DNA of 64,000 bases, taken from Auanema rhodensis. Its lineage: Eukaryota; Animalia; Nematoda. Numbering within the stretch: position 1 is the first letter of the stretch; each line of letters starts with the position of its first letter. The notes beneath the pieces were generated by a model that worked only from the letters and a program-made list of their open reading frames with translations, did not search any database and was not told where the DNA came from. The translations under genes were made by a program, and so were the position numbers. The DNA is taken from NCBI GenBank assembly GCA_964057225.1, contig OZ059897.1, forward strand, positions 10,168,001 through 10,232,000. The letters run 5' to 3'. Shown in pieces: positions 2,886 through 63,670 of the stretch.

Positions 2886-2899
2886 TATGTGCTGCTGCT

Positions 2900-4044: not shown

Positions 4045-4193
4045 AAAAGTATATTTTTGACAGCTGACGCCGAAAATATGATTTTGACAGCTGACGCCCC
4101 CAAAAGTATGTTTTTAGCAGTTGACGCCCTGAAAAGTATGTTTTTAGCAACTGTTTGGGGGGGTGGTTAGTAAATTCGGCATGGCTCTCTACT
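4045..4193 (-). repeat. Right TIR with the same subterminal repeats
   Basis: Reverse complement reads AGTAGAGAGCCATGCCGAATTTACTAACCAC followed by about 4 repeat units. Confidence 0.85.
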
Positions 4194-4418: not shown

Positions 4419-4490
4419 GCCCAAGTAGTATAGTGGTTAGTACTCCACGTTGTGGCCGTGGCGACACAGGTTCGATTCCTGTCTTGGGCA
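4419..4490 (+). tRNA. tRNA-His(GTG), first copy of the + array
   Basis: Acceptor GCCCAAG/CTTGGGC, D stem GTAT/GTAC, anticodon arm CCACG-TTGTGGC-CGTGG, T arm ACAGG-TTCGATT-CCTGT, discriminator A; 72 nt. Confidence 0.97.
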
Positions 4491-4496
4491 TTTTTT
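4491..4496 (+). terminator. Pol III terminator (T6; T6-T7 follows nearly every copy)
   Basis: TTTTTT directly after the discriminator base. Confidence 0.85.
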
Positions 4497-7400
4497 GTTT
4501 TGAAATTAAAATGCTATAAACATATTGCTTGCTTGTCATGTTAGATTTGTTTAATTCAAATACTTATTTAAGTTCTAACAATTTTCGATATGAACACACT
4601 AACTCTGTTAAGTTGTTGTAATATCGGCCCAAGTAGTATAGTGGTTAGTACTCCACGTTGTGGCCGTGGCGACACAAGTTCGATTCCTGTCTTGGGCATT
4701 TTTTGTTTTGAAATTAAAATGCTATAAACATATCGCTTGCTGTCATGTTAGATTTGTTTAATTTAAATACTTATTTAAGTTCTAACAATTTTCGACTTAA
4801 TCACGTTCAATTAACAGTATTGTTTTCAAAAATAAAGACATCTTTCAATTTCTGGTCATTGAATTAGAATTTTCATGTTGTCACACAGAAATTGAAGAAT
4901 CTTAGTTCATTTCAGTAACAATGAACACACTAACTTTGTTAAGTTGTTGTAATATCGGCCCAAGTAATATAGTGGTTAGTACTCCACGTTGTGGCCGTGG
5001 CGACACAGATTCGATTCCTGTCTTGGGCATTTTTTGTTCTGAAATTTAAATGCTATAAAATTATTGCTTGTTTGTCATGTTAGATTTCTTTAATTTGAAT
5101 ACTTATTCAAGTTCTAACAATTTTCGATTTAATCACGTTCAATCAACTGTATTGTTTTCAAAAATAAAGACAAAATTCAATTTCTGTTCATTGAATTAGA
5201 ATTTTCATGTTGTCACACAGAAATTGAAGAATCTTAGTTCATTTCAGTAACAATGAACACACTAACTCTGTTAAGTTGTTGTAATATCGGCCCAAGTAGT
5301 ATAGTGGTTAGTACTCCACGTTGTGGCCGTGGCGACACAGGTTCGATTCCTGTCTTGGGCATTTTTTGTTTTGAAATTAAAATGCTATAAACATATTGCT
5401 TGCTTGTCATGTTAGATTTGTTTAATTCAAATACTTATTTAAGTTCTAACAATTTTCGATATGAACACACTAACTCTGTTAAGTTGTTGTAATATCGGCC
5501 CAAGTAGTATAGTGGTTAGTACTCCACGTTGTGGCCGTGGCGACACAAGTTCGATTCCTGTCTTGGGCATTTTTTGTTTTGAAATTAAAATGCTATAAAC
5601 ATATTGCTTGCTGTCATGTTAGATTTGTTTAATTTAAATACTTATTTAAGTTCTAACAATTTTCGATATGAACACACTAACTCTGTTAAGTTGTTGTAAT
5701 ATCGGCCCAAGTAGTATAGTGGTTAGTACTCCACGTTGTGGCCGTGGCGACACAAGTTCGATTCCTGTCTTGGGCATTTTTTGTTTTGAAATTAAAATGC
5801 TATAAACATATCGCTTGCTGTCATGTTAGATTTGTTTAATTTAAATACTTATTTAAGTTCTAACAATTTTCGACTTAATCACGTTCAATCAACTGTATTG
5901 TTTTCAAAAATAAAGACATCTTTCAATTTCTGGTCATTGAATTAGAATTTTCATGTTGTCACACAGAAATTGAAGAATCTTAGTTCATTTCAGTAACAAT
6001 GAACACACTAACTCTGTTAAGTTGTTGTAATATCGGCCCAAGTAATATAGTGGTTAGTACTCCACGTTGTGGCCGTGGCGACACAGATTCGATTCCTGTC
6101 TTGGGCATTTTTTGTTCTGAAATTTAAATGCTATAAAATTATTGCTTGTTTGTCATGTTAGATTTCTTTAATTTGAATACTTATTCAAGTTCTAACAATT
6201 TTCGATTTAATCACGTTCAATCAACTGTATTGTTTTCAAAAATAAAGACAAAATTCAATTTCTGTTCATTGAATTAGAATTTTCATGTTGTCACACAGAA
6301 ATTGAAGAATCTTAGTTCATTTCAGTAACAATGAACACACTAACTCTGTTAAGTTGTTGTAATATCGGCCCAAGTAGTATAGTGGTTAGTACTCCACGTT
6401 GTGGCCGTGGCGACACAGGTTCGATTCCTGTCTTGGGCATTTTTTGTTTTGAAATTAAAATGCTATAAACATATTGCTTGCTTGTCATGTTAGATTTGTT
6501 TAATTCAAATACTTATTTAAGTTCTAACAATTTTCGATATGAACACACTAACTCTGTTAAGTTGTTGTAATATCGGCCCAAGTAGTATAGTGGTTAGTAC
6601 TCCACGTTGTGGCCGTGGCGACACAAGTTCGATTCCTGTCTTGGGCATTTTTTGTTTTGAAATTAAAATGCTATAAACATATTGCTTGCTGTCATGTTAG
6701 ATTTGTTTAATTTAAATACTTATTTAAGTTCTAACAATTTTCGACTTAATCACGTTCAATCAACTGTATTGTTTTCAAAAATAAAGACATCTTTCAATTT
6801 CTGGTCATTGAATTAGAATTTTCATGTTGTCACACAGAAATTGAAGAATCTTAGTTCATTTCAGTAACAATGAACACACTAACTTTGTTAAGTTGTTGTA
6901 ATATCGGCCCAAGTAATATAGTGGTTAGTACTCCACGTTGTGGCCGTGGCGACACAGATTCGATTCCTGTCTTGGGCATTTTTTGTTCTGAAATTTAAAT
7001 GCTATAAAATTATTGCTTGTTTGTCATGTTAGATTTCTTTAATTTGAATACTTATTCAAGTTCTAACAATTTTCGATTTAATCACGTTCAATCAACTGTA
7101 TTGTTTTCAAAAATAAAGACAAAATTCAATTTCTGTTCATTGAATTAGAATTTTCATGTTGTCACACAGAAATTGAAGAATCTTAGTTCATTTCAGTAAC
7201 AATGAACACACTAACTCTGTTAAGTTGTTGTAATATCGGCCCAAGTAGTATAGTGGTTAGTACTCCACGTTGTGGCCGTGGCGACACAGGTTCGATTCCT
7301 GTCTTGGGCATTTTTTGTTTTGAAATTAAAATGCTATAAACATATTGCTTGCTTGTCATGTTAGATTTGTTTAATTCAAATACTTATTTAAGTTCTAACA

Positions 7401-10400
7401 ATTTTCGATATGAACACACTAACTCTGTTAAGTTGTTGTAATATCGGCCCAAGTAGTATAGTGGTTAGTACTCCACGTTGTGGCCGTGGCGACACAAGTT
7501 CGATTCCTGTCTTGGGCATTTTTTGTTTTGAAATTAAAATGCTATAAACATATCGCTTGCTGTCATGTTAGATTTGTTTAATTTAAATACTTATTTAAGT
7601 TCTAACAATTTTCGACTTAATCACGTTCAATTAACAGTATTGTTTTCAAAAATAAAGACATCTTTCAATTTCTGGTCATTGAATTAGAATTTTCATGTTG
7701 TCACACAGAAATTGAAGAATCTTAGTTCATTTCAGTAACAATGAACACACTAACTTTGTTAAGTTGTTGTAATATCGGCCCAAGTAATATAGTGGTTAGT
7801 ACTCCACGTTGTGGCCGTGGCGACACAGATTCGATTCCTGTCTTGGGCATTTTTTGTTCTGAAATTTAAATGCTATAAAATTATTGCTTGTTTGTCATGT
7901 TAGATTTCTTTAATTTGAATACTTATTCAAGTTCTAACAATTTTCGATTTAATCACGTTCAATCAACTGTATTGTTTTCAAAAATAAAGACAAAATTCAA
8001 TTTCTGTTCATTGAATTAGAATTTTCATGTTGTCACACAGAAATTGAAGAATCTTAGTTCATTTCAGTAACAATGAACACACTAACTCTGTTAAGTTGTT
8101 GTAATATCGGCCCAAGTAGTATAGTGGTTAGTACTCCACGTTGTGGCCGTGGCGACACAGGTTCGATTCCTGTCTTGGGCATTTTTTGTTTTGAAATTAA
8201 AATGCTATAAACATATTGCTTGCTTGTCATGTTAGATTTGTTTAATTCAAATACTTATTTAAGTTCTAACAATTTTCGATATGAACACACTAACTCTGTT
8301 AAGTTGTTGTAATATCGGCCCAAGTAGTATAGTGGTTAGTACTCCACGTTGTGGCCGTGGCGACACAAGTTCGATTCCTGTCTTGGGCATTTTTTGTTTT
8401 GAAATTAAAATGCTATAAACATATTGCTTGCTGTCATGTTAGATTTGTTTAATTTAAATACTTATTTAAGTTCTAACAATTTTCGATATGAACACACTAA
8501 CTCTGTTAAGTTGTTGTAATATCGGCCCAAGTAGTATAGTGGTTAGTACTCCACGTTGTGGCCGTGGCGACACAAGTTCGATTCCTGTCTTGGGCATTTT
8601 TTGTTTTGAAATTAAAATGCTATAAACATATCGCTTGCTGTCATGTTAGATTTGTTTAATTTAAATACTTATTTAAGTTCTAACAATTTTCGACTTAATC
8701 ACGTTCAATCAACTGTATTGTTTTCAAAAATAAAGACATCTTTCAATTTCTGGTCATTGAATTAGAATTTTCATGTTGTCACACAGAAATTGAAGAATCT
8801 TAGTTCATTTCAGTAACAATGAACACACTAACTCTGTTAAGTTGTTGTAATATCGGCCCAAGTAATATAGTGGTTAGTACTCCACGTTGTGGCCGTGGCG
8901 ACACAGATTCGATTCCTGTCTTGGGCATTTTTTGTTCTGAAATTTAAATGCTATAAAATTATTGCTTGTTTGTCATGTTAGATTTCTTTAATTTGAATAC
9001 TTATTCAAGTTCTAACAATTTTCGATTTAATCACGTTCAATCAACTGTATTGTTTTCAAAAATAAAGACAAAATTCAATTTCTGTTCATTGAATTAGAAT
9101 TTTCATGTTGTCACACAGAAATTGAAGAATCTTAGTTCATTTCAGTAACAATGAACACACTAACTCTGTTAAGTTGTTGTAATATCGGCCCAAGTAGTAT
9201 AGTGGTTAGTACTCCACGTTGTGGCCGTGGCGACACAGGTTCGATTCCTGTCTTGGGCATTTTTTGTTTTGAAATTAAAATGCTATAAACATATTGCTTG
9301 CTTGTCATGTTAGATTTGTTTAATTCAAATACTTATTTAAGTTCTAACAATTTTCGATATGAACACACTAACTCTGTTAAGTTGTTGTAATATCGGCCCA
9401 AGTAGTATAGTGGTTAGTACTCCACGTTGTGGCCGTGGCGACACAAGTTCGATTCCTGTCTTGGGCATTTTTTGTTTTGAAATTAAAATGCTATAAACAT
9501 ATTGCTTGCTGTCATGTTAGATTTGTTTAATTTAAATACTTATTTAAGTTCTAACAATTTTCGACTTAATCACGTTCAATCAACTGTATTGTTTTCAAAA
9601 ATAAAGACATCTTTCAATTTCTGGTCATTGAATTAGAATTTTCATGTTGTCACACAGAAATTGAAGAATCTTAGTTCATTTCAGTAACAATGAACACACT
9701 AACTTTGTTAAGTTGTTGTAATATCGGCCCAAGTAATATAGTGGTTAGTACTCCACGTTGTGGCCGTGGCGACACAGATTCGATTCCTGTCTTGGGCATT
9801 TTTTGTTCTGAAATTTAAATGCTATAAAATTATTGCTTGTTTGTCATGTTAGATTTCTTTAATTTGAATACTTATTCAAGTTCTAACAATTTTCGATTTA
9901 ATCACGTTCAATCAACTGTATTGTTTTCAAAAATAAAGACAAAATTCAATTTCTGTTCATTGAATTAGAATTTTCATGTTGTCACACAGAAATTGAAGAA
10001 TCTTAGTTCATTTCAGTAACAATGAACACACTAACTCTGTTAAGTTGTTGTAATATCGGCCCAAGTAGTATAGTGGTTAGTACTCCACGTTGTGGCCGTG
10101 GCGACACAGGTTCGATTCCTGTCTTGGGCATTTTTTGTTTTGAAATTAAAATGCTATAAACATATTGCTTGCTTGTCATGTTAGATTTGTTTAATTCAAA
10201 TACTTATTTAAGTTCTAACAATTTTCGATATGAACACACTAACTCTGTTAAGTTGTTGTAATATCGGCCCAAGTAGTATAGTGGTTAGTACTCCACGTTG
10301 TGGCCGTGGCGACACAAGTTCGATTCCTGTCTTGGGCATTTTTTGTTTTGAAATTAAAATGCTATAAACATATTGCTTGCTGTCATGTTAGATTTGTTTA

Positions 10401-12950
10401 ATTTAAATACTTATTTAAGTTCTAACAATTTTCGACTTAATCACGTTCAATTAACAGTATTGTTTTCAAAAATAAAGACATCTTTCAATTTCTGGTCATT
10501 GAATTAGAATTTTCATGTTGTCACACAGAAATTGAAGAATCTTAGTTCATTTCAGTAACAATGAACACACTAACTTTGTTAAGTTGTTGTAATATCGGCC
10601 CAAGTAATATAGTGGTTAGTACTCCACGTTGTGGCCGTGGCGACACAGATTCGATTCCTGTCTTGGGCATTTTTTGTTCTGAAATTTAAATGCTATAAAA
10701 TTATTGCTTGTTTGTCATGTTAGATTTCTTTAATTTGAATACTTATTCAAGTTCTAACAATTTTCGATTTAATCACGTTCAATCAACTGTATTGTTTTCA
10801 AAAATAAAGACAAAATTCAATTTCTGTTCATTGAATTAGAATTTTCATGTTGTCACACAGAAATTGAAGAATCTTAGTTCATTTCAGTAACAATGAACAC
10901 ACTAACTCTGTTAAGTTGTTGTAATATCGGCCCAAGTAGTATAGTGGTTAGTACTCCACGTTGTGGCCGTGGCGACACAGGTTCGATTCCTGTCTTGGGC
11001 ATTTTTTGTTTTGAAATTAAAATGCTATAAACATATTGCTTGCTTGTCATGTTAGATTTGTTTAATTCAAATACTTATTTAAGTTCTAACAATTTTCGAT
11101 ATGAACACACTAACTCTGTTAAGTTGTTGTAATATCGGCCCAAGTAGTATAGTGGTTAGTACTCCACGTTGTGGCCGTGGCGACACAGGTTCGATTCCTG
11201 TCTTGGGCATTTTTTGTTTTGAAATTAAAATGCTATAAACATATTGCTTGCTTGTCATGTTAGATTTGTTTAATTTAAATACTTATTTAAGTTCCAACAA
11301 TTTTCGATTAAATCACGTTCAATTAACTGTATTGTTTTCAAAAATAAAGACAAAATTCAATTTCTGTTCATTGAATTAGAATTTTCATGTTGTCACACAG
11401 GAAATGAAAAATCTTAGTTCATTTCAGGAACAATGAACACAATAACTTTGTTTAGTTGTTGAAATATCGGCCCAAGTAGTGTAGTGGTTAGTACTCCACG
11501 TTGTGGCCGTGGCGACACAGGTTCGATTCCTGTCTTGGCCATTTTTTGTTTTGAAATTAAAATGCTATAAACATATTGCTTGCTTGTCATGTTAGATTTG
11601 TTTAATTTAAATACTTATTTAAGTTCCAACAATTTTCGATTAAATCACGTTCAATTAACTGTATTGTTTTCAAAAATAAAGACAAAATTCAATTTCTGTT
11701 CATTGAATTAGAATTTTCATGTTGTCACACAGGAAATGAAGAATCTTTGTTCATTTCAGGAACAATGAACACAATAACTTTGTTTAGTTGTTCAAATATC
11801 GGCCCAAGTAGTGTAGTGGTTAGTACTCCACGTTGTGGCCGTGGCGACACAGGTTCGATTCCTGTCTTGGGCATTTTTTGTTTTGAAATTAAAATGCTAT
11901 AAACATATTGCTTGCTTGTCATGTTAGATTTGTTTAATTCAAATACTTATTTAAGTTCTAACAATTTTCGATTTAATCACGTTCAATCAACTGTATTGTT
12001 TTCAAAAATAAAGACAAAATTCAATTTCTGTTCATTGAATTAGAATTTTCATGTTGTCACACAGAAATTGAAGAATCTTAGTTCAATTCAGTAACAATGA
12101 ACACAATAACTTTGTTTAGTTGTTGTAATATCGGCCCAAGTAGTATAGTGGTTAGTACTCCACGTTGTGGCCGTGGCGACACAGGTTCGATTCCTGTCTT
12201 GGGCATTTTTTGTTTTGAAATTAAAATGCTATAAACATATTGCTTGCTGTCATGTTAGATTTGTTTAATTCAAATACTTATTTAAGTTCTAACAATTTTC
12301 GACTTAATCACGTTCAATTAACAGTATTGTTTTCAAAAATAAAGACATCTTTCAATTTCTGGTCATTGAATTAGAATTTTCATGTTGTCACACAGAAATT
12401 GAAGAATCTTAGTTCATTTCAGTAACAATGAACATACTAACTTTGTTAAGTTGTTGTAATATCGGCCCAAGTAATATAGTGGTTAGTACTCCACGTTGTG
12501 GCCGTGGCGATACAGATTCGATTCCTGTCTTGGGCATTTTTTGTTCTGAAATTTAAATGCTATAAAATTATTGCTTGTTTGTCATGTTAGATTTCTTTAA
12601 TTTGAATACTTATTCAAGTTCTAACAATTTTCGATTTAATCACGTTCAATCAACCGTATTGTTTTCAAAAATAAAGACGAAATTCAATTTCTGTTCATTG
12701 AATTAGAATTTTCATGTTGTCACACAGAAATTGAAGAATCTTAGTTCATTTCAGTAACAATGAACACACTAACTCTGTTAAGTTGTTGTAATATCGGCCC
12801 AAGTAGTATAGTGGTTAGTACTCCACGTTGTGGCCGTGGCGACACAGGTTCGATTCCTGTCTTGGGCATTTTTTGTTCTGAAATTTAAATGCTATAAACA
12901 TATTGCTTGCTTGTCATGTTAGATTTGTTTAATTCAAATACTTATTCAAG

Positions 12951-13331
12951 CGTTACATATTGTTTCTTCCCGTCTTTTCATGGTTGGAAGATATATGTAC
13001 TTCTACCTTGTTCCTTAGGTAGGCAGACCCGAACGCTTCGATTTCCTTATTAAGACAAATACTTAACGAGAAAAGAATTCATTATCAGATAACAAGAAAA
13101 TACAATATAAGAATTACATTAAGAAAGAATATAAAGAGATATAATGAAGTATTAAATAGAGTATATATATAGATGATATAGAGATGAGACTCACATGGCT
13201 ATAAGACAACCTATCTGGGTTAGACCAGAAGCAAGAGTGCCGTGTGTGTCCCATGTTGTAGGCGGGGCTTGTTCAGGCTCCCGCTATTTGAATAGCGCGC
13301 ACATGTTTACCATGTGCTTGCAGATGTGACA
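12951..13331 (-). repeat. 3' LTR (about 381 bp)
   Basis: Starts TGTCACAT right after the PPT; ends ATGTAACG at the array junction; TATA-like run near 13162-13171. No partner LTR to confirm the limits. Confidence 0.7.
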
Positions 13332-13343
13332 TCCCCCCACCTT
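13332..13343 (-). promoter_or_regulatory. Polypurine tract
   Basis: AAGGTGGGGGGA immediately before TG. Confidence 0.8.
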
Positions 13344-13928
13344 AAAGAGTTGAACATCCTCGTTCAAAAACAAAATAAATTAATTCACTTTTTAAGATAG
13401 TTGGATGTTGGAAAAAAAAATCATGGTGTAGTGAATAAAAAAAAATGTATACAATACGATTTGAAAGTTTAGCTATTGTCTCTTCAAGTTTGTTGAATTC
13501 GAAATGTAGTATCGAGTAGATTCTATTCCATTCACTTGAGTAGTGAAATGCTTGCAAACGAGAGCTTTGCTTCTAAACCATTCGACTGTTATATAGTCGT
13601 TCTTTTCTTGAGTTGTACAGGTACGGTGTTACCCTGAGAATAGGTCGAGCCCGTTCTGTACAAAAAAGAATGAAAACTCGTTTAACCCGTATGACTAATG
13701 TCCATAAGGTGAATACAAGTAATGATTGAGCATAAAAAATAGCAAGATTCACAAGAGAATGTTGAAAAAATCTACTCAATGAGAGTTGGAGTAATAAAAC
13801 AAACCCTTGTAAAACAATAGCAGACTTTTCGGAGAAAATCAATCAGCAACAAAGAAGTGTTACAATCAGAAATGGCACAAAATAAAAAAAAATTTCAACA
13901 GTTTGATTTTGTTAAAAAAAAACTACCT

Positions 13929-16900
13929 TCAAGAAATTGTGATAACTGGAATAGATGTTGTCCGTTGGTAAGGTTTGACGAAGTCTTTGTGTACTCTTCT
14001 GCTTTTTCCTTTATCTGTTTGAACCACGACGAAAGATCTTTGAACTGCTGTAACTAAATAAGGCCCTTCGAATGAAGGTGTTAGTTTGTTTCGAGTAGAA
14101 TTCACTTTTATCATAACTAAGTCATTAACCTGAATTTCTTTATTTTGTGTTCTATTTCGTGTATTGTACCGTTGTTCATTCTTCTTTGTGCATGTTTCAA
14201 TTCTATCTTTTACTATATTAGATGTGCTTTCATTTTGTATTAGCGATCTATTGACAAAATCTTCTGTAGGATTGGCTGGTTCTTCAGTTTGAAGATTATT
14301 TCCAGGCAATTGATGGTCAATAGGAAGTCTTGCATCCCGACCAAATAATACAACATATGGACTAATAGATGTTGATGAGTTTGGTAACGTATTGATCGCA
14401 AACATAACTTTAGGTAGGTGTATATCCCAGTTAGTTTGTTGTTCATTCACGAATGAAGAGAGAGCTTCTTCTAAAGTTCTATGAAGTCTCTCCACTTGTC
14501 CATTAGCATTTTTATGATATGGTAGCGTAGTAGTGTGTTCAATTCCAAATTGTTTACACATAGCTTGAAATTCAGATGACAAAAAGCTACTACCATTATC
14601 GGTTATCATACTCATTGGTGGTCCATATATGAAAACAAATCTAATTACAAACGCTTTTGTGATTTCAGTAGCCGTTTGTGTTATTAATGGGCAAGTTGTT
14701 CCCCATTTACTAAAAGCGTCTTGAATACTCAAGATGTATCGATGTCCATCATTAGTGCGAGGTAAAGGACCTAGTATATCTACATGAATACGATCAAATG
14801 GCTTTTCGGGTATAACAAATCTTCCCATAGGTTGAATATACGATTGGTGTGGGTTAGATTTCCTACTTGCACATTTTGTACAACGATTAATAAATTCAGT
14901 TATTTGTGGAACCATATTAGTCCAAAAGAATCGTCGTCGAATCGCATCAGTAGTTTTATTTATACCTAGGTGTGCACCAATTTTGGAATCTTCGTGAAAA
15001 AACTTGATGACAACATCAGTTATTTTGTCGTTTCGAGGCAAAATAATAGATGGTTTTAAATAATTTTTCGCTTGTTTTGCATGTAATATGCCTTCTCGTT
15101 CTTCATACCGGTCTGATATATTAGCCGGACAGTTATCATTATTAATTTGAGAAAGTGCTTCGCGAATCCAGGGAACTCCAGCTTGAACTTTCCGTATTTC
15201 TTCACAATTTAGTTGGTCAATAGAAGAAATAGTTGTAATATGAGCAATAAAAGCATCAACAGGTTTTACTTTGTCCTTTGGTTTAGTAGGACGACTGTCA
15301 TTTGCTTCGTTTTCTATATACTTGGAGAGAGCATCACAGACACTGTTTAATTTGCCAGGACGATATTCAATCTTTATGTTGAAATCTTGTGTCATTAGTT
15401 GATACTTGGCTAATCTACCTATGAGATCTTTACGCGACATTAAACTGGTTAATGGTCGGTGATCTGTGATAACTGTGGTAGGTACTTCTAATACATAGGT
15501 ACGGAATTGTTGAAGAGCAAAGACTAAACCGAGTGCTTCAACTTCAATAGGAGGATATTTCCGTTCCGCTGGAGTCAACTTTCTACTAGCGAACGCAATC
15601 GGGTGTAATGGAGAATTTTTCTCTGCTGATTGCAATAAAACTGCTCCCACAGCGATCATACTGCCATCACTTTCTATAACAAAAGGTTGGTCTGCTTTAG
15701 GAGGTTTCAGTACAGGGGCAGTACACAGTAATGTTTTTAAAGTTTTAAATGCGTCTGCATGTTCCGATTTCCACTCAAAAGGAGTATCCTTATGTGTTAA
15801 CTTATACAATGGCTCAGCTATTCCGGCATAATTTTGAATAAACCGTCGAAAATAGTTAGTCATACCTAGAAAGGATCTGACAGCCGTAACTGTGCTTGGA
15901 TTTGGAAATTCGGAAACAGCCTGTATTTTAGCAGGATCTGGTTTAACACCATTTCTACCTATTATAAAACCCAAAAACTTTACTTCAGTGGCTGCAAAGC
16001 AACATTTAGATAACTTAATTTTTAACCCTAGTTCAGTGACCTTTTTCAGCACTTCTTGTATATCTCTTAAATGTTCTTCAGCTGAGTTCGAAATTATTAG
16101 CAAATCATCTAGATATACAAACAGTTTGCATCTAACAAGAGATTGCAAGTATCGTACTGCGGATTGAAAAGTGTGTGGCGCTCCACAGAATCCCATAGGC
16201 ATTCGGCAATACTGATAGGTACCTGATGGAGTGGTAAAAGCAGTTAGGTATCTATCTGAGCGTTTCAACGGTATTTGGAAGAAACCAGAAATGAGATCAA
16301 AATTCGAAAAGAACTGAGCTCCAGCCGCTAAGTCTATGATATCAGGAATGTGTGGGATGCTGTATGTTTATTTCTTAGTAACACTATTCAATGCTCTAAA
16401 GTCAGTAACGAACCGGAAAGAATTATCTTTCTTTTTCACAAGAACAACTGGACTAGTGAAAGTAGCCGTCGAATTTTCGATTATACCTTGCGACAACATT
16501 TCTTTCACTTGCCGTTCTACTTCTTCTTGCTTACCCAATGGTACTCTGTAAGATCTACTTTTTGGAAAATCCATATCAGATCTTATAGGAATGGCATGTT
16601 CAACTGGTCCGCAAAAGAGACCAATATTATGATCATGGTTGAAAAATGCCGTTTGGTTTTCCTTAATGATTGTGATCAGATTTTTCTTCATTTTATGGGA
16701 CAGAGTGCAAGAATTGAAGTTCAAATCATCCAAAAGATGCTGAGGAAAAGTTGGTAACTTATCTTCCCAATCAGCTTCAGGTGGAACATAATCGTTCATA
16801 ATTTCTTTAGATGCTATAAGTCCTGAACCAATGTGGTCATTTTTATTAATTTTAATTGGCTTTGAAGAATTGTTTGATACTACCATAGTAATAGGAAAAG

Positions 16901-18070
16901 GTCCTATGGCGGCATCTGGAATTGAGATAGGACCTATGCTAGATTTTAAAAGAGCATATTGATCAAAATCTAATTCTGGTCCTGTTTGCAAAGATATGTG
17001 GGAGGTACTATGTGGTGGAACTGTTACTGTGGACAAACTTATGATATTTACTGTTTTAGTTGTGGTTTTATATGCAAAACAACCAGGTTTTACTAAGGGT
17101 GTTTCCATATTACCAACAATCAACTTTCCTTTACATAGTTTTAATGTAGTAAATATCTCTCTTTCTTCCAACGTACGCATAAAATCAGTACCAAGTAACA
17201 TTTGTCCTGGACAGTCATTGTCTTCAGATATTAAAAATTCGTGTTCCACTTGGTAACCTGCTATACCCACATCTAACTTGCATTTTCCCACAAAGCGAAA
17301 CTCTGATCCATTTGCAGTGGATGCAGATTTAGAATATTTTGTAAAATATTGTCTTCCAATATATGCCAATGTGGAGAACGGAATATATGAGACCGTAGCT
17401 CCAGAATCCCATAATGCTAACAGTCCTCTACCTTCAATGTCAATATGAACAAACGGTAACATGTGTCCATTTTTCTTTGCTGTTGTGTGACATACAAAAG
17501 GTATGGCTAAAGGAATGTAAGTTATGATGGTGGGAAAATAGCTCCGCATCAATTCATCACTAACTGTTTCATGAATCTCATCTCCCTCAAGTGGTGGAGC
17601 TGTTGGGCTCAACATGATATGGATTATTTTTAACATAGAAGTAGGGGAGAGATAACATTTTATAGTGAAATATAATGCTATCATTAGACATAATATCAGA
17701 GTTATACAACCGATGGTAATGAGTGTTCGTTCAATTGAACCTATACAAAAGTCAATGAACAGATCCCAATTGGAGAAAACAATTTTCCTGGCATCTCTTA
17801 TAAGTTTACTTCCTTTGAAGATGAAAGAGGAAATTTGAGGCCAATCACGTGAACGAGAAATTACGCGGAGAAGATCATGGTGAGGTGAAGTAGATAAATT
17901 ATAACCATAAGTTAATCCAATAGATAGGGCTAAGGATTTTTCAGTCGAATTTTCATTTTTTTTCAGTCGAATTTTCATTTTCATTTTCGTGAATCGAAGT
18001 TTACTCAATTCAGCATAATGATCATGTTTTTCTGAATGAATACTATCTACTTTATGTGTGTCACCTTTCT
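13929..18070 (-). pseudogene. pol: Env C-terminus/TM + protease + RT + RNase H + integrase in one frame, broken by TAA at 16368-16370
   Basis: TM TLITIGCITLILCLMIALYFTI, PTAPP, LWDSGA, SPVVLVKKKD, YLDD, ESDGS/TDHRPL, HHCC, HVDILGP/TDNGS/VERLH, GPY; frame continues TYSIPHIPDIID...FDLISGFFQIP past the stop. Confidence 0.93.
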
Positions 18071-21000
18071 GCTACATACAACTCTCGACCTCTCTCGTAC
18101 GCATTAGGGGAAGGAGTTGTTAAACTACGAATTGTAGTTTTGGTGGAAGTTATTGGGGTTACAGTAGTATGCTGTACCATATTTTTATCAGTTGTGATTT
18201 GAGTTTTAACCCAACTTATGAATTCTAAAACTTCTGTTTTATTGAATTTAGGATTTTCCTGTGGGTATTCGATGGACTGTGGAGGAAATCCATAATATGC
18301 TGTACTATTCTTTGTATAAAGGTTGTGATAGTCAGGCAGCTTGGATATAATTGCTAAATCTTGCTCTTGGTTGTTTCTAACAGTAGCATCAGCTTTTTGT
18401 TGTCGACTGACTTGCATGTCACGAGATATTTGTTCTTTTCCCGATTGTTGTTGGATCATGAATAACATGCCTTGAGCAGTTGCAATAATTTCAGATGGAT
18501 TCATATTTCCACTGCGTGGTAATATAGATGGATATAAGGCTCTTGCCAACTGTTCGATTGATGGAACTGTTTGTGTACCATCAAGAATTGTGGCTTGATA
18601 TACTACTGCGTGAGCCATTCCTCGAAAGAAATCTTCTATGGATGTTGTAGATTTCATCAAAGATCTTTTTAACCGAGGAACTTCTATACGACGAGCTACT
18701 TGAGTGATAAGGTCATCCAATTTCATGCTATTAATCACCTGTCTAGTAGCCAGTTTAATTTCCTCTATACCCATACATTGTAAAATCAAAAGATTGGGAT
18801 CTTTGAAATTATTAGACTTTGCCCAGTTAGTTATGTGATCTTTTGTCAATCCTAAACTAACAATTGTGTCAATGAACAGTGGATTATCTATCGCGAATTG
18901 GAGCAAACTTTCATAAGATGATGTAGCTGCATATCTCATATATTTTGCGTAAAACTTAGTGATAGATGCAGATCCAAAAATGAAAGTAGGTCTTAGAAAT
19001 GGAAACGCATATGGTTGGGATTTCGCATTAACAAAAAGATAATCATCACTGAAAGAGCGATGTTTTTGAGGTAATGCATTACGTTTATTTCTGCGTCTAT
19101 CAGCATTAAGCAAAGTATTGGAAAGATCAAGCAAATTATAAACACGGGGATATGCTGTGAATCGGATAATTGCCTCAGAAGATGATTCAAAAACAGCGAA
19201 TTCAAAACAAGATTGAACGTGAGCGGATGTGGAATGATTTTGGAGAACAAAAGCGCTTTCAATAGAGTGAACTAGAAGAATATGATCACCCAACATGGCG
19301 GAGAAGGGGCCAAGTTTTTGATAGTGACAGACAACTGATGGGATAGGTGGTTGCCAGATAACTGCACCTTCACCAGTTGCACAAAACCCTTCATTTCCTT
19401 TACAATTATCAGTATTTATAAATAAGTCTGATACAATGTGATCTTCTTTCAATCTAGTTATTATCCCTCGCTTCAATACAAATTGTTCAATTTCTACACA
19501 TTCTTCAGTGGACCAAGAGCGAGTTGGATTATGCTCGTTTAATGGTGTTTCAAAAACTGAATGCTGTTGGGCATTCATGATTTTATCATTCCACATACGA
19601 TTTCTATGTGCTCGAACACAATCTTTCTTATCTACTGTTTCAATATGAGAGAATGTGGTGTTACGATCTCTCAAAAACATGAAATCTCTCACACAGCTTT
19701 TATACTTTTTCACATAGCATTTCCATGCTTCCCATGACTCTATCTCAGCCTTTGGTAGATATATTTCTACCTCAACACTGTGAGCCTTTCCAATTTCTGC
19801 CTTATGGCAGCCTGTGACCACAGGAGGTGTTACTAATATACCCCCTTCAGATTGAGCGCAAATCTGATATTTTGCCGACCCAAAGGGAAGGCATGAGAGT
19901 GCCAATAAAGTCAGGCACAACGTGACCGGTGGCATGAATGGGGTCGCTACGCTGTATACCCTTGAGTTACCATTCCCATTGGCTGATGGTCTTTGTCTTC
20001 TTGGGGAACTAGGTCTAGGGTTCCAAGACGAGCTATTGGCATTTCTGCCATTGGCAAATGGGCGGTTTCCCGGGTTAGGACGCCTATTCATATTCCCGTT
20101 TTGCGAGTTATTATTATTATAACGTACGGCAGAAGGTCGCTCTCTCTCTCGCTCATAATCATTAGAGCCATTATTGTGCTGAGCCCAGTTATTATTTTTT
20201 TTATTTTTTTTATTATTTTTATAATTTTTATTATTATTATTATTCCTACTTCTTTCTCTTTCTTCACTAAAGCTTAATTTATGCTGTAAAGCATTTATGA
20301 GCTCCTTCAAGGTGCTGGTGTCTTCATTTCTTTTCATGAAGCTATTTCGAACGCCTTCTTCAAACCTAGCTAATTTCTTAGCTTGTTCATAAGTGGCGGG
20401 GTTTTTAGTTAAAACCGCAATACCCAGTTCCTCTTTTAAACCATTTAAAAATGCCGTTTTCAACATTGGTTCCCGCTCGGGATCCATTGGTGACATTATG
20501 GTGCTTGCCATTCTCTCTAATTCCATACTAAAATCAAGAACAGATTTATCTCCTTGTTGTACTTGATGAATAAGCGCTATGGTGAAATTTTTATCTGTTT
20601 TAGGCGCTAAAAGCTCAGTGAGCTGATCCATCAAAACAATCCATGGGCCATTAGTTCTTATGCCACTAGGAATACTATTATACAAGGAGAGAGCTGTTTC
20701 ATTTGATTCCAAAAGAAGAGGCAAAATTAATAGTCTCTCAGGTAAGCTTAGATTCATAACATTAAAAAATCTGTTTAAAGATTCAACAAAAGAACGAAAG
20801 CTACGAGAGCCGTCATACCTGGGACAGAGATGGCAATTCAAAATAGTTGCCATATTTCTAGAGGGTGGAGCAACATTAGAATTAGGAGATGGAGAGGTAG
20901 GAGTCATTTTTCTTTCAAAAGCTTTAGTTATAGCAGCGGCCCACCGACTTGGTGATCTATTTCGTACTGTAGTAGGTGCCCGAGGTGTTTCCTCAGTGAT

Positions 21001-21081: not shown

Positions 21082-21344
21082 AAATTCAAAAGGAGAGAGG
21101 TAGGTGGATGGAGTATTTAAGTTTTTAGAATTAAATTCAAAAACTTGGCGTACCTCTGGTGATCCTTGTTCCTGATCTTTGTTTTCCTCGCTGATGTCCG
21201 AGTCCGACAGGGTGGCTGGTGAATACAGTTAGATGAATATAAGAGAGCGTACTGGAAGCAACTAGACTCCAGTAAAAACGTTTGTGAGAATGGCGTCTGA
21301 TGAAGGAGGATCGTTGAAGCTTCAAGCTCCGCCTCCAGCCATGT

Positions 21345-21356
21345 GTCACGACACCA
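21345..21356 (-). promoter_or_regulatory. Primer binding site TGGTGTCGTGAC
   Basis: ...AACA-TC-TGG arrangement upstream of gag. Confidence 0.7.
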
Positions 21357-21750
21357 GATGTTAGCGCTTATGGTAAACAACCATTGACCGTCTGTCGTGA
21401 TATTTGAATATTATAATCACTAATGTCAGCTTAGAGACAAATAAGGAATCACAGATGGTGCCTTAAGCCTGTTTGAAAACTTTTGAATTTTAACAGCTGT
21501 TATTGACTACACATGTCAAACAGCTGGTACGCATGGGCCAACTATTTGAATGTGAGTAAGCTTAAAGTAAACAAAAATGTCTTATCTCGTATATTAAGTT
21601 CAATTTTATAAAGTTTATTAAGATTTGTAGAAAGAATTTCAAAAAAAATCTTAATTAAGATAATTTTTAATTTAATTTCCAAAGATTTAGAAGGTAATTT
21701 AAGATTGATATAGGAGTTTAAATTCAGTAATCTGTCAGTAATATAGGAAA

Positions 21751-48700: not shown

Positions 48701-51700
48701 TGAAAACAATACAGTTGATTGAACGTGATTAAATCGAAAATTGTTAGAACTTAAATAAGTATTTGAATTAAACAAATCTAACATGACAAGCAAGCAATAT
48801 GTTTATAGCATTTTAATTTCAAAACAAAAAATGCCCAAGACAGGAATCGAACCTGTGTCGCCACGGCCACAACGTGGAGTACTAACCACTATACTACTTG
48901 GCTAAACACAGAAGAATCTAACATTACAACAACTTAACAAAATTAGTGTGTTCATTGTTACTGAAATGAACTAAGATTATTCAATTTCTGTGTGACTACA
49001 TGAAAATTCTAATTCAATGACCAGAAATTGAAAGATGTCTTTATTTTTGAAAACAATACAGTTGATTGAACGTGATTAAATCGAAAATTGTTAGAACTTA
49101 AATAAGTATTTGAATTAAACAAATCTAAGATGACAAGCAAGCAATATGTTTATAGCATTTTAATTTCAAAACAAAAAATGCCCAAGACAGGAATCGAACC
49201 TGTGTCGCCACGGCCACAACGTGGAGTACTAACCACTATACTACTTGGGCCGATATTTCAACAACTAAACAAAGTTATTGTGTTCGTTGTTACTGAAATG
49301 AACTAAGATTCTTCATTTCCTGTGTGACAACATGAAAATTCTAATTCAATGAACAGAAATTGAATTTTGTCTTTATTTTTGAAAACAATACAGTTAATTG
49401 AACGTGATTTAATCGAAAATTGTTGGAACTTAAATAAGTATTTAAATTAAACAAATCTAACATGACAAGCAAGCAATAATTTCATAGCATTTAAATTTCA
49501 AAACAAAAAATGCCCAAGACAGGAATCGAACCTGTGTCGCCACGGCCACAACGTGGAGTACTAACCACTATACTACTTGGGCCGATATTACAACAATTTA
49601 ACAGAGTTAGTGTGTTCATTGTTACTGAAATGAACTGAAATTCTTCAATTTCTGTGTGACAACATGAAAATTCTAATTCAATGAACAGAAATAGAATTTT
49701 GTTTTTATTTTTGAAAACAATACGGTTGATTGAACGTGATTAAATCGAAAATTGTTAGAACTTGAATAAGTATTCAAATTAAAGAAATCTAACATGACAA
49801 ATAAGCAATAATTTTATAGCATTTAAATTTCAAAACAAAAAATGCCCAAGACAGGAATCGAATCTGTGTCGCCACGGCCACAACGTGGAGTACTAACCAC
49901 TATATTACTTGGGCCGATATTACAACAACTTAACAAAGTTAGTGTGTTCATTGTTAATGAATTGAACTAAGATTCTTCAATTTCTGTGTGACAACATGAA
50001 AATTCTAATTCAATGACCAGAAATTGAATGATGTCTTTATTTTTGAAAACAATACAGTTGATTGAACGTGATTAAATCGAAAATTGTTAGAACTTAAATA
50101 AGTATTTGAATTAAACAAATCTAACATGACAAGCAAGCAATATGTTTATAGCATTTTAATTTCAAAACAAAAAAATGCCCAAGACAGGAATCAAACCTGT
50201 GTCGCCACGGCCACAACGTGGAGTACTAACCACTATATTACTTGGGCCGATATTACAACAACTTAACAAAGTTAGTGTGTTCATTGTTAATGAATTGAAC
50301 TAAGATTCTTCAATTTCTGTGTGACAACATGAAAATTCTAATTCAATGACCAGAAATTGAATGATGTCTTTATTTTTAAAAACAATACAGTTGATTGAAC
50401 GTGATTAAATCGAAAATTGTTAGAACTTAAATAAGTATTTGAATTAAACAAATCTAACATGACAAGCAAGCAATATGTTTATAGCATTTTAATTTCAAAA
50501 CAAAAAAATGCCCAAGACAGGAATCGAACCTGTGTCGCCACGGCCACAACGTGGAGTACTAACCACTATACTACTTGGGCCGGTATTACAACAACTTATT
50601 AAAGTTAGTGTGTTCAGTGTTACTGAATTGAACTAAGATTCTTCATTTCCTGTGTGACAACATGAAAATTCTAATTCAATGAACAGAAATTGAATTTTGT
50701 CTTTATTTTTGAAAACAATACGGTTGATTGAACGTGATTAAATCGAAAATTGTTAGAACTTGAATAAGTATTTGAATTAAACAAATCTAACATGACAAGC
50801 AAGCAATATGTTTATAGCATTTAAATTTCAGAACAAAAAATGCCCTAGACAGGAATCGAATCTGTGTCGCCACGGCCACAACGTGGAGTACTAACCACTA
50901 TATTACTTGGGCCGATATTACAACAACTTAACAAAATTAGTGTGTTCATTGTTACTGAAATGAACTAAGATTCTTCAATTTCTGTGTGACAACATGAAAA
51001 TTCTAATTCAATGAACAGAAATTGAATTTTGTCTTTATTTTGAAAACAATACGGTTGATTGAACGTGATTAAATCGAAAATTGTTAGAACTTAAATAAGT
51101 ATTTGAATTAAACAAATCTAACATGACAAGCAAGCAATATGTTTATAGCATTTTAATTTCAAAACAAAAAATGCCCAAGACAGGAATCGAACCTGTGTCG
51201 CCACGGCCACAACGTGGAGTACTAACCACGATACTTTATGGGCCGGTATTACAACAACTAAACAAAGTTATTGTGTTCATTGTTACTGAATTGAACTAAG
51301 ATTCTTCAATTTCTGTGTGACAACATGAAAATTCTAATTCAATGACCAGAAATTGAAAGATGTCTTCATTTTTGAAAACAATACTGTTAATTGAACGTGA
51401 TTAAATCGAAAATTGTTAGAACTTAAATAAGTATTTGAATTAAACAAATCTAACATGACAAGCAAGCAATATGTTTATAGCATTTTAATTTTAAAACAAA
51501 AAATGCCCAAGACAGGAATCGAACCTGTGTCGCCACGGCCACAACGTGGAGTACTAACCACGATACTTTATGGGCCGGTATTACAACAACTAAACAAAGT
51601 TATTGTGTTCATTGTTACTGAATTGAACTAAGATTCTTCAATTTCTGTGTGACAACATGAAAATTCTAATTCAATGACCAGAAATTGAAAGATGTCTTTA

Positions 51701-57700: not shown

Positions 57701-60700
57701 TTAATTGAACGTGATTAAATCGAAAATTGTTAGAACTTAAATAAGTATTTGAATTAAACAAATCTAACATGACAAGCAAGCAATATGTTTATAGCATTTT
57801 AATTTTAAAACAAAAAATGCCCAAGACAGGAATCGAACCTGTGTCGCCACGGCCACAACGTGGAGTACTAACCACGATACTTTATGGGCCGGTATTACAA
57901 CAACTAAACAAAGTTATTGTGTTCATTGTTACTGAATTGAACTAAGATTCTTCAATTTCTGTGTGACAACATGAAAATTCTAATTCAATGACCAGAAATT
58001 GAAAGATGTCTTTATTTTTGAAAACAATACAGTTGATTGAACGTGATTAAATCGAAAATTGTTAGAACTTAAATAAGTATTTGAATTAAACAAATCTAAC
58101 ATGACAAGCAAGCAATATGTTTATAGCATTTTAATTTCAAAACAAAAAAATGCCCAAGACAGGAATCGAACCTGTGTCGCCACGGCCACAACGTGGAGTA
58201 CTAACCACTATACTACTTGGGCCGATATTACAACAACTTAACAAAGTTAGTGTGTTCATTGTTAATGAATTGAACTAAGATTCTTCAATTTCTGTGTGAC
58301 AACATGAAAATTCTAATTCAATGACCAGAAATTGAATGATGTCTTTATTTTTGAAAACAATACAGTTGATTGAACGTGATTAAATCGAAAATTGTTAGAA
58401 CTTAAATAAGTATTTGAATTAAACAAATCTAACATGACAAGCAAGCAATATGTTTATAGCATTTTAATTTCAAAACAAAAAAATGCCCAAGACAGGAATC
58501 AAACCTGTGTCGCCACGGCCACAACGTGGAGTACTAACCACTATATTACTTGGGCCGATATTACAACAACTTAACAAAGTTAGTGTGTTCATTGTTAATG
58601 AATTGAACTAAGATTCTTCAATTTCTGTGTGACAACATGAAAATTCTAATTCAATGACCAGAAATTGAATGATGTCTTTATTTTTAAAAACAATACAGTT
58701 GATTGAACGTGATTAAATCGAAAATTGTTAGAACTTAAATAAGTATTTGAATTAAACAAATCTAACATGACAAGCAAGCAATATGTTTATAGCATTTTAA
58801 TTTCAAAACAAAAAAATGCCCAAGACAGGAATCGAACCTGTGTCGCCACGGCCACAACGTGGAGTACTAACCACTATACTACTTGGGCCGGTATTACAAC
58901 AACTTATTAAAGTTAGTGTGTTCAGTGTTACTGAATTGAACTAAGATTCTTCATTTCCTGTGTGACAACATGAAAATTCTAATTCAATGAACAGAAATTG
59001 AATTTTGTCTTTATTTTTGAAAACAATACGGTTGATTGAACGTGATTAAATCGAAAATTGTTAGAACTTGAATAAGTATTTGAATTAAACAAATCTAACA
59101 TGACAAGCAAGCAATATGTTTATAGCATTTAAATTTCAGAACAAAAAATGCCCTAGACAGGAATCGAATCTGTGTCGCCACGGCCACAACGTGGAGTACT
59201 AACCACTATATTACTTGGGCCGATATTACAACAACTTAACAAAATTAGTGTGTTCATTGTTACTGAAATGAACTAAGATTCTTCAATTTCTGTGTGACAA
59301 CATGAAAATTCTAATTCAATGAACAGAAATTGAATTTTGTCTTTATTTTGAAAACAATACGGTTGATTGAACGTGATTAAATCGAAAATTGTTAGAACTT
59401 GAATAAGTATTTGAATTAAACAAATCTAACATGACAAGCAAGCAATATGTTTATAGCATTTAAATTTCAGAACAAAAAATGCCCAAGACAGGAATCGAAT
59501 CTGTGTCGCCACGGCCACAACGTGGAGTACTAACCACTATATTACTTGGGCCGATATTACAACAACTTAACAAAATTAGTCTGTTCATTGTTACTGAAAA
59601 GAACTAAGATTCTTCAATTTCTGTGTGACTACATGAAAATTCTAATTCAATGACCAGAAATTGAAAGATGTCTTCATTTTTGAAAACAATACTGTTAGTT
59701 GAACGTGATTAAATCGAAAATTGTTAGAACTTAAATAAGTATTTGAATTAAACAAATCTAACATGACAAGCAAGCAATATGTTTATAGCATTTTAATTTC
59801 AAAACAAAAAATGCCCAAGACAGGAATCGAACCTGTGTCGCCACGGCCACAACGTGGAGTACTAACCACGATACTTTATGGGCCGGTATTACAACAACTA
59901 AACAAAGTTATTGTGTTCATTGTTACTGAATTGAACTAAGATTCTTCAATTTCTGTGTGACAACATGAAAATTCTAATTCAATGACCAGAAATTGAAAGA
60001 TGTCTTCATTTTTGAAAACAATACTGTTAATTGAACGTGATTAAATCGAAAATTGTTAGAACTTAAATAAGTATTTGAATTAAACAAATCTAACATGACA
60101 AGCAAGCAATATGTTTATAGCATTTTAATTTTAAAACAAAAAATGCCCAAGACAGGAATCGAACCTGTGTCGCCACGGCCACAACGTGGAGTACTAACCA
60201 CGATACTTTATGGGCCGGTATTACAACAACTAAACAAAGTTATTGTGTTCATTGTTACTGAATTGAACTAAGATTCTTCAATTTCTGTGTGACAACATGA
60301 AAATTCTAATTCAATGACCAGAAATTGAAAGATGTCTTTATTTTTGAAAACAATACAGTTGATTGAACGTGATTAAATCGAAAATTGTTAGAACTTAAAT
60401 AAGTATTTGAATTAAACAAATCTAACATGACAAGCAAGCAATATGTTTATAGCATTTTAATTTCAAAACAAAAAAATGCCCAAGACAGGAATCGAACCTG
60501 TGTCGCCACGGCCACAACGTGGAGTACTAACCACTATACTACTTGGGCCGATATTACAACAACTTAACAAAGTTAGTGTGTTCATTGTTAATGAATTGAA
60601 CTAAGATTCTTCAATTTCTGTGTGACAACATGAAAATTCTAATTCAATGACCAGAAATTGAATGATGTCTTTATTTTTGAAAACAATACAGTTGATTGAA

Positions 60701-63670
60701 CGTGATTAAATCGAAAATTGTTAGAACTTAAATAAGTATTTGAATTAAACAAATCTAACATGACAAGCAAGCAATATGTTTATAGCATTTTAATTTCAAA
60801 ACAAAAAAATGCCCAAGACAGGAATCAAACCTGTGTCGCCACGGCCACAACGTGGAGTACTAACCACTATATTACTTGGGCCGATATTACAACAACTTAA
60901 CAAAGTTAGTGTGTTCATTGTTAATGAATTGAACTAAGATTCTTCAATTTCTGTGTGACAACATGAAAATTCTAATTCAATGACCAGAAATTGAATGATG
61001 TCTTTATTTTTAAAAACAATACAGTTGATTGAACGTGATTAAATCGAAAATTGTTAGAACTTAAATAAGTATTTGAATTAAACAAATCTAACATGACAAG
61101 CAAGCAATATGTTTATAGCATTTTAATTTCAAAACAAAAAAATGCCCAAGACAGGAATCGAACCTGTGTCGCCACGGCCACAACGTGGAGTACTAACCAC
61201 TATACTACTTGGGCCGGTATTACAACAACTTATTAAAGTTAGTGTGTTCAGTGTTACTGAATTGAACTAAGATTCTTCATTTCCTGTGTGACAACATGAA
61301 AATTCTAATTCAATGAACAGAAATTGAATTTTGTCTTTATTTTTGAAAACAATACGGTTGATTGAACGTGATTAAATCGAAAATTGTTAGAACTTGAATA
61401 AGTATTTGAATTAAACAAATCTAACATGACAAGCAAGCAATATGTTTATAGCATTTAAATTTCAGAACAAAAAATGCCCTAGACAGGAATCGAATCTGTG
61501 TCGCCACGGCCACAACGTGGAGTACTAACCACTATATTACTTGGGCCGATATTACAACAACTTAACAAAATTAGTGTGTTCATTGTTACTGAAATGAACT
61601 AAGATTCTTCAATTTCTGTGTGACAACATGAAAATTCTAATTCAATGAACAGAAATTGAATTTTGTCTTTATTTTGAAAACAATACGGTTGATTGAACGT
61701 GATTAAATCGAAAATTGTTAGAACTTGAATAAGTATTTGAATTAAACAAATCTAACATGACAAGCAAGCAATATGTTTATAGCATTTAAATTTCAGAACA
61801 AAAAATGCCCAAGACAGGAATCGAATCTGTGTCGCCACGGCCACAACGTGGAGTACTAACCACTATATTACTTGGGCCGATATTACAACAACTTAACAAA
61901 ATTAGTCTGTTCATTGTTACTGAAAAGAACTAAGATTCTTCAATTTCTGTGTGACTACATGAAAATTCTAATTCAATGACCAGAAATTGAAAGATGTCTT
62001 CATTTTTGAAAACAATACTGTTAGTTGAACGTGATTAAATCGAAAATTGTTAGAACTTAAATAAGTATTTGAATTAAACAAATCTAACATGACAAGCAAG
62101 CAATATGTTTATAGCATTTAAATTTCAGAACAAAAAATGCCCAAGACAGGAATCGAATCTGTGTCGCCACGGCCACAACGTGGAGTACTAACCACTATAT
62201 TACTTGGGCCGATATTACAACAACTAAACAAAGTTATTGTGTTCATTGTTACTGAAAAGAACTAAGATTCTTCAATTTCTGTGTGACTACATGAAAATTC
62301 TAATTCAATGACCAGAAATTGAAAGATGTCTTCATTTTTGAAAACAATACTGTTAGTTGAACGTGATTAAATCGAAAATTGTTAGAACTTAAATAAGTAT
62401 TTGAATTAAACAAATCTAACATGACAAGCAAGCAATATGTTTATAGCATTTTAATTTCAAAACAAAAAATGCCCAAGACAGGAATCGAACCTATGTCGCC
62501 ACGGCCACAACGTGGAGTACTAACCACGATACTTTATGTGCCGGTATTACAACAACTAAACAAAGTTATTGTGTTCATTGTTACTGAATTGAACTAAGAT
62601 TCTTCAATTTCTGTGTGACAACATGAAAATTCTAATTCAATGACCAGAAATTGAAAGATGTCTTCATTTTTGAAAACAATACTGTTAATTGAACGTGATT
62701 AAATCGAAAATTGTTAGAACTTAAATAAGTATTTGAATTAAACAAATCTAACATGACAAGCAAGCAATATGTTTATAGCATTTTAATTTTAAAACAAAAA
62801 ATGCCCAAGACAGGAATCGAACCTGTGTCGCCACGGCCACAACGTGGAGTACTAACCACGATACTTTATGGGCCGGTATTACAACAACTAAACAAAGTTA
62901 TTGTGTTCATTGTTACTGAATTGAACTAAGATTCTTCAATTTCTGTGTGACAACATGAAAATTCTAATTCAATGACCAGAAATTGAAAGATGTCTTTATT
63001 TTTGAAAACAATACAGTTAATTGAACGTGATTTAATTGAAAATTGTTGGAACTTAAATAAGTATTTTAAGAAAACAAATCTAACATGACAAGCAAGCAAT
63101 GATTTCATAGCATTTAAATTTCAGAACAAAAAATGCCCAAGACAGGAATCGAATCTGTGTCGCCACGGCCACAACGTGGAGTACTAACCACTATATTACT
63201 TGGGCCGATATTACAACAACTTAACAAAGTTAGTGTGTTCAGTGTTACTGAATTGAACTAAGATTCTTCATTTCCTGTGTGACAACATGAAAATTCTAAT
63301 TCAAAGAACAGAAATTGAATTTTGTCTTTATTTTTGAAAACAATACGGTTGATTGAACGTGATTAAATTGAAAATTGTTAGAACTTGAATAAGTATTTGA
63401 ATTAAACAAATCTAACATGACAAGCAAGCAATATGTTTATAGCATTTTAATTTCAAAACAAAAAATGCCCAAGACAGGAATCGAACCTGTGTCGCCACGG
63501 CCACAACGTGGAGTACTAACCACTATATTACTTGGGCCGATATTACAACAACTTAACAAAGTTAGTGTGTTCATTGTTAATGAATTGAACTAAGATTCTT
63601 CAATTTCTGTGTGACAACATGAAAATTCTAATTCAATGACCAGAAATTGAATGATGTCTTTATTTTTGAA
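21751..63670 (-). repeat. Tandem tRNA-His(GTG) array, 127 copies, mostly 331-333 bp units, several higher-order periods
   Basis: Reverse complement of the + array unit; tRNAs at 21816, 22148, 22479 ... 63466. Confidence 0.97.
21816..21887 (-). tRNA. tRNA-His(GTG), intact copy nearest the retroelement
   Basis: Identical to 4419-4490 in reverse complement; G at -1; T6 terminator. Confidence 0.97.

Follow-up and report, generated by a model that had tools for sequence, protein, structure and literature searches.

Tandem arrays of transfer RNA (tRNA) genes are textbook knowledge for Entamoeba and are also known in frogs, fish, plants and humans. A survey from 2010 listed Entamoeba as the only reported case of tRNA tandem repeats. 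In this organism, the tRNA genes are arranged in long tandem arrays, which account for a considerable part of the repeat DNA, and one unit can contain up to 5 different tRNA genes, sometimes together with 5S RNA, with complex short tandem repeats between the genes (PMC2652664). The locus described here lies in a 64-kb stretch of contig OZ059897.1 of the nematode Auanema rhodensis (assembly GCA_964057225.1, positions 10,168,001 to 10,232,000 of the forward strand), referred to below as the window, and consists of repeated genes for the histidine tRNA with the anticodon GTG, tRNA-His(GTG). It resembles the Entamoeba arrays in its long tandem organization and its contribution to repeat DNA, but each of its units carries one isotype only, and Tandem Repeats Finder (TRF) found no short tandem repeats in the array spacers. 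Literature searches returned no description of nematode tRNA arrays, of a tRNA-His satellite, or of the Necator and Dictyocaulus arrays presented below.

Other described systems share some features with this locus. Tandem tRNA units in tens to hundreds of copies, with a variable copy number, occur in cyprinid fish and in the human tRNA variable number tandem repeat at 1q23.3, the latter being composed of large GC-rich units with CTCF sites (PMC4041453), unlike the single-gene unit of 332 bp found in the window. In Cirrhinus molitorella (CM082399.1, 19,848,170-19,877,019), a tRNA array with a period of ~1025 bp fills all 28.8 kb retrieved, and it differs from the window by its heterogeneous unit, which carries the series Ser-Lys-Ser-His. 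The Xenopus 3.18 kb tRNA repeat is another vertebrate multi-tRNA tandem array. The annotation treats the Cirrhinus array as coding for proteins 1427 to >1800 residues long (QQF64_016502 and neighbours). Satellites derived from short interspersed elements (SINEs), as well as other tRNA-related satellites, also have units that contain tRNA-related sequence, but the SINE-derived ones originate from retroposed SINEs with a body and a tail (PMC10702118). A tRNA-derived SINE or SINE satellite was considered for the window and rejected, since the unit is a full tRNA gene with genomic flanks, directly followed by its terminator, and no SINE body, A-rich tail or dispersed copies are present in the window.

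ARAGORN identified 157 tRNA-His(GTG) genes in the whole 64-kb window, all of them with a cloverleaf and a GTG anticodon, and the same 157 copies exceed the gathering score of the Rfam family RF00005, with scores from 67.3 down to ~41 bits, so that both programs bear out the number of about 157 copies given in a first-pass annotation made from the sequence. The genes form two arrays of opposite orientation that converge tail-to-tail. Array A (4419-12950, plus strand) contains 30 tRNA-His units, organized mostly as an 871 bp higher-order repeat (208+331+332 bp) within a 2820 bp super-repeat, and array B (21750-63670, minus strand) contains 127 units, most of them 331-333 bp long, which are grouped into higher-order repeats of 7 and 19 units. 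Total array DNA amounts to ~50.4 kb, in line with the satellite of about 50 kb that the same annotation had placed over 4419-63670; the satellite is nevertheless not continuous, because the two inverted arrays are split by a retroelement of 8.8 kb. The predicted unit lengths of 208 or 332 bp are likewise found, as 207/208 and 331-333 bp, with the qualification that the 208 bp unit, which lacks a 124 bp segment of the spacer, is a minority form (12 units) and that three units measure 347/348 bp. TRF reported periods of 332 and 207/208 bp, with 113.9 copies in a single row. A run of at least four T residues lies within 12 nt of the tRNA 3' end in all 157 copies, and it is mostly T6 or T7, which bears out the terminator that the first-pass annotation had given to every unit. 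The GC content of the window is 32.4%, and no satellite-like fragments were found in its non-array DNA.

Besides being a head-to-tail array of more than 100 copies (157 units), the locus has the multi-unit periodicity of satellite DNA, and a satellite made of tRNA genes is therefore real. Identity between units is ~94.8% overall, 97.8% between units seven positions apart, and 97.8-98.8% between units 19 positions apart in array B. Two adjacent 19-unit higher-order repeats of 6327 bp each (36177-48830, minus strand), each beginning with a unit of the variant called 'I', are 99.6% identical, with 25 differences. Between the 871 bp copies of array A there are 0-3 mismatched positions, and between the two 2820 bp copies there is 1; identity within the higher-order blocks of 871, 2820 and 6327 bp thus ranges from 99.6 to 100%. 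The variants follow one another in fixed orders, such as A-E-A-C-C-B-G, which recurs several times over, the 19-unit block, and A208-F331-B332. The units of array A are nearest (98-99.7%) to the 208-331-332 units located at the inner end of array B, and for this reason array A is best seen as an inverted, re-amplified offshoot of array B.

The first-pass annotation described the satellite as built from a single tRNA-His gene, which does not hold at the level of sequence, given that 19 tRNA sequence variants are present among the 157 copies. The canonical sequence, a term used here for the one tRNA sequence present in 44 copies, folds into a perfect cloverleaf, and both its A box (TAGTATAGTGG) and its B box (GGTTCGATTCC) agree with the consensus. 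An example is the first copy of array A (4419-4490, plus strand), which scores 67.3 bits with Rfam, carries A73, has its A box and its B box intact, and is followed by T6, its -1 base being a C. Promoters for RNA polymerase III (Pol III) were scored by an A box TRGYNNAGTGG, a B box GGTTCGANNCC and a T-run terminator, and all three elements are kept in 52 of the 157 copies, that is, in a minority of about a third. The A box is broken in 95 copies and the B box in 73, with a consensus B box in the other 84, and the stems are free of mismatches in 47 copies. The common derived forms, in standard tRNA numbering, are G10A, G10A+G53A, G10A+C56U, G52A and U68A, and a further one combines A6U, G7A, U8A and A14C. 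In variant 'I', which comprises the three units of 347/348 bp (30860-30933, 42504-42577 and 48831-48904, all on the minus strand), 16 bp are inserted at the 5' end of the tRNA, together with an altered acceptor stem and the 5' flank TCTTCTGTGTTT, and two of the three open a 19-unit repeat.

An A occupies position 73 (linear position 72) in every copy, and the -1 base is a genomically encoded G in 153/157 copies. Caenorhabditis elegans has no Thg1 and uses tRNA-His with A73 and an encoded G-1 (PMC4338351), and the tRNA-His of the array is of this Thg1-independent type. The C. elegans genome contains 17 tRNA-His genes (PMC4338351) compared with 157 in the window, in agreement with the earlier claim that the copy number goes beyond translational need.

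We interpret the locus as a tandem family of tRNA-His genes, belonging to a rhabditid (clade V type) nematode and evolving like satellite DNA, which consists of a working minority and damaged passengers, an interpretation that we regard as probable. A tRNA-His gene together with its flanks would have been amplified head-to-tail, after which unequal exchange and conversion would have reshuffled the array, giving rise to the nested higher-order repeats, the variant with the 124 bp deletion and the inverted, re-amplified block that is array A. About a third of the copies, those with G-1, A73, A and B boxes and a T-run, are probably transcribed by Pol III and supply the cell with tRNA-His, as we infer from their sequence. 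The other two thirds, with lesions in the promoter or in the stems, would be neutral passengers that have spread since turnover amplifies any unit caught in it. Because turnover acts on units whether they are intact or not, the excess copy number would be a side effect of the way the array turns over in its transposon-rich surroundings and not a response to demand.

Similar arrays are found in other nematodes. Relatives were sought by means of open reading frames (ORFs) that read through the tRNA, in order to catch spurious protein models translated from similar arrays. In Necator americanus (CM062681.1, ~16,679,000-16,705,364), at least 141 tRNA-His units of 178-183 bp are arranged head-to-tail over at least 26 kb, these sizes being lower bounds, as the array extends past the retrieved stretch. 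Canonical units (13/141) are interspersed along the Necator array, and ~120 units (~90%) carry G52A+G53C, which destroys the B box. In Dictyocaulus viviparus (KN716376.1, 9166-11149 of the retrieved stretch), 8 tRNA-His copies, nearly all of them canonical, surround an assembly gap with a spacing that alternates between 135 and 373 bp. The canonical copy of the window is identical (72/72) to the D. viviparus tRNA-His and to the canonical Necator copies, and it matches the Steinernema tRNA-His at 70/72 positions, the difference being one compensated pair. The Necator and Dictyocaulus arrays thus share with the window the homogeneous head-to-tail organization of tRNA-His(GTG), the same canonical tRNA, the encoded G-1 and A73. 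Moreover, damaged copies dominate in Necator as they do in the window, with the B box struck at positions 52/53 in both. Unit length, on the other hand, differs among the three species, and their spacers are unrelated, as no spacer homology could be detected among the window, Necator and Dictyocaulus arrays, with all scores inside the shuffled range. The 183 bp period of Necator is a multiple of three, and the array is annotated as the 'hypothetical proteins' RB195_001565, RB195_001567 and RB195_001568; the Dictyocaulus cluster is annotated as the hypothetical protein DICVIV_07977.

The translation of tRNA-His is also found in ORFs of Angiostrongylus, Heterorhabditis, Parascaris, Toxocara, Onchocerca, Setaria and Syphacia. 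There are sequence hints that Parascaris univalens, a species with programmed DNA elimination, may contain tandem tRNA-His units. The spurious ORFs A0A915A756, A0A915A713 and A0A915A744 of P. univalens in UniRef all contain the tRNA-His translation, and one includes a further tRNA-like stretch that is degenerate. Exact look-ups of two ORFs encoded by the satellite found nothing on record, a second antisense-frame ORF yielded no candidates, and exact-pattern scans of a metagenome collection with the 3' half of the tRNA and with the most conserved spacer stretch gave 0 matches each. One ORF match (P0130/L007) was discarded as a related array, as it proved to be a chance match with no tRNA in its DNA.

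The organization in same-isotype arrays is probably not restricted to histidine. Table S7 of the Heterorhabditis bacteriophora draft genome, which is based on short reads, assigns most of the predicted tRNA genes to head-to-tail clusters of a single isotype, whose fixed periods lie in the range 160-590 bp, for example 209 bp for Ala, 389 for Lys, 588 for Thr, 240 for Ser, 191 for Tyr and 166 for Met, with His pairs at 190-193 bp, and these clusters often lie on contigs of ~1 kb, with 2-7 copies resolved per contig (PMC3715494). The repetition of one isotype at a fixed period and the GC content (32.2% for the H. bacteriophora genome) are as in the window, whereas the His period and the number of copies per contig are not. 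The table suggests that the H. bacteriophora clusters are collapsed arrays, distributed genome-wide, which the paper does not discuss. Together with the window and with the Necator and Dictyocaulus arrays, it also suggests that in some clade V nematodes tRNA genes are kept in satellite-like arrays. Since such arrays recur in clade V nematodes and for other isotypes, they would represent a lineage-wide form of tRNA gene organization and not a histidine-specific device. The same comparison argues against the relation that had been drawn between the 332 bp unit and the size of a dinucleosome, as unit size varies between the related arrays, with 178-183 bp in Necator, 135+373 bp in Dictyocaulus and 190-193 bp in Heterorhabditis. 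As a weak lead, a spurious H. bacteriophora ORF and the unit of the window share residues encoded by the 5' flank.

Two observations within the unit weigh against a gene family with a working minority. The tRNA is no more conserved within the array than the spacer is: nucleotide diversity is 0.038 in the tRNA vs 0.052 in the spacer, segregating sites make up 21/72 positions (29%) and 74/260 positions (28%), respectively, and 30% of the 72 bp spacer windows have a modal haplotype frequency equal to or higher than that of the tRNA. With a diversity close to that of the spacer and an ordinary haplotype spectrum, the copies give no direct indication of being under selection. The other observation is a run of 26 nt at tRNA positions 21-46 that is invariant in 157/157 copies, the next longest such run in the unit being of 12 nt (permutation P ~0.009). 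This run reaches from the 3' half of the D stem through the anticodon arm into the first part of the variable loop, and it is left unexplained by a model of array turnover; in the Necator array the pattern differs, with an invariant D arm and a variable anticodon arm. The diversity values would fit a purely non-functional satellite derived from a tRNA, with the working tRNA-His genes located elsewhere and the canonical copies surviving through recent amplification, and so would the damage seen in 67% of the copies, the ~90% of Necator units with a dead B box and the position of the array among transposons. We nevertheless consider a satellite of this kind unlikely, because 44 exact copies in the window and 13 in Necator carry a tRNA that is conserved across nematode orders despite unrecognisable spacers, and because most H. 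bacteriophora tRNA genes of most isotypes are clustered, so that arrays appear to be the home of working genes. A deficit of real copies is a different matter. The repeat could be real and its length or copy number inflated by the assembler, and array A, in which some blocks match exactly and others diverge at 1-3 positions, with a single difference between the two 2820 bp copies, would be compatible with such an over-expansion; array B, by contrast, contains structured differences (25 between the two 6.3 kb repeats, plus an ordered succession of 19 variants), and a comparable array is seen in Necator, whose chromosome-level assembly is independent, which together make over-expansion a slim prospect, in particular for array B.

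Functions other than the supply of tRNA were also weighed. A structural satellite, with TFIIIC, condensin or centromere-like chromatin, or acting as a boundary, as a pairing site or as germline-restricted DNA, had been put forward in the first-pass annotation, and it would be in keeping with a copy number above need and with the consensus B box retained in 84/157 copies; in addition, programmed DNA elimination has been described among rhabditid nematodes, and the DNA removed is rich in satellites (10.1101/2025.10.23.681605). The TFIIIC, boundary and condensin ideas are nonetheless weakened, as they need intact B boxes, the very part lost in 73/157 copies here and, to a greater extent, in Necator (~90%). 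Neither the length of the unit nor the sequence of the spacer is conserved from one species to another, the window contains no telomeric repeat or elimination-site feature, and nothing in the sequence is specific to the structural idea, which is accordingly disfavoured and, in our view, quite improbable. Even less probable is a dedicated source of small RNAs, in the form of tRNA fragments or of germline small RNAs from the convergent arrays, which could yield antisense transcripts if they were read through. The invariant anticodon arm would be in its favour, but a Pol III terminator ends every unit, the fold of the spacer RNA is not significant on either strand (z -0.09 and 0.10), and no other Rfam family is present in the window, where a permissive scan of the spacers returned only tRNA and sub-threshold noise; furthermore, it is the D arm, and not the anticodon arm, that is invariant in Necator. 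We also give a small chance to the speculation that the tRNA-His arrays of rhabditid and strongylid nematodes have been selected for promoter-dead copies, the B box having been struck independently at positions 52/53 in the window and in Necator, with a non-translational role, which might be that of germline-specific or eliminated chromatin, of a control of replication or recombination, or of a buffer for the Thg1-independent processing of G-1.

Tandem arrays of this kind affect tRNA gene counts and the annotation of tRNA pseudogenes, and they yield spurious protein models, as is the case for RB195_001565/67/68 and DICVIV_07977. The array of the window also offers a natural system in which to follow the decay and renewal of a multicopy Pol III gene family inside a satellite.

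Transposons adjoin the arrays on all sides, and no host protein genes were found in the window. The 8.8 kb element between the arrays (12951-21749, minus strand) is a retroelement of the Ty3/gypsy type, recognized by its Pfam domains. Its first ORF, of 1006 residues (18061-21081), encodes gag followed by a region of ~630 residues, and is followed by the protease (16368-18008) and by reverse transcriptase-RNaseH-integrase (13929-16268), all on the minus strand. A direct-repeat search found no pair of long terminal repeats (LTRs) for this element. Its best relatives come from rhabditid nematodes and are an element of H. bacteriophora, with 48% identity over the full length, and elements of Auanema and Caenorhabditis brenneri, with 39-60% over parts. 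These transposon proteins, along with A73 and the encoded G-1 of the tRNA, indicate a rhabditid (clade V) nematode as the source of the window. The region of ~630 residues after gag has numerous cysteines, an RRRNKR site and a stretch that resembles a signal peptide; it has no match in Pfam or PDB, and its AlphaFold model is unusable (predicted local distance difference test, pLDDT, 35). From its sequence, an envelope-like domain could lie between gag and the protease. The protease ORF opens with a membrane-anchor-like segment that can be aligned with the Auanema and C. brenneri elements.

A piece of another copy of this retroelement (63698-64000, minus strand) lies directly against the outer end of array B. 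It corresponds to the protease region and shares 98.7% identity with 17440-17742, which has the same orientation, and array B is therefore bracketed by two same-orientation copies of one retroelement. A simple insertion of an LTR retrotransposon into one array was rejected as the origin of the present arrangement, as there is no LTR pair, the flanking arrays are inverted, and the junctions are found 64-80 bp downstream of a tRNA instead of at a Pol III start. On its other side, array A is flanked by the nested remains of transposons of the Tc1/mariner type (1-4193), with transposase pieces at 1690-2701 (minus strand) split by a frameshift. These remains include a direct duplication of 1.2 kb (1-1203 and 2209-3412) with 99.8% identity, and inverted terminal regions (1204-1353 and 4046-4193), each composed of about four sub-repeats of 30 bp.

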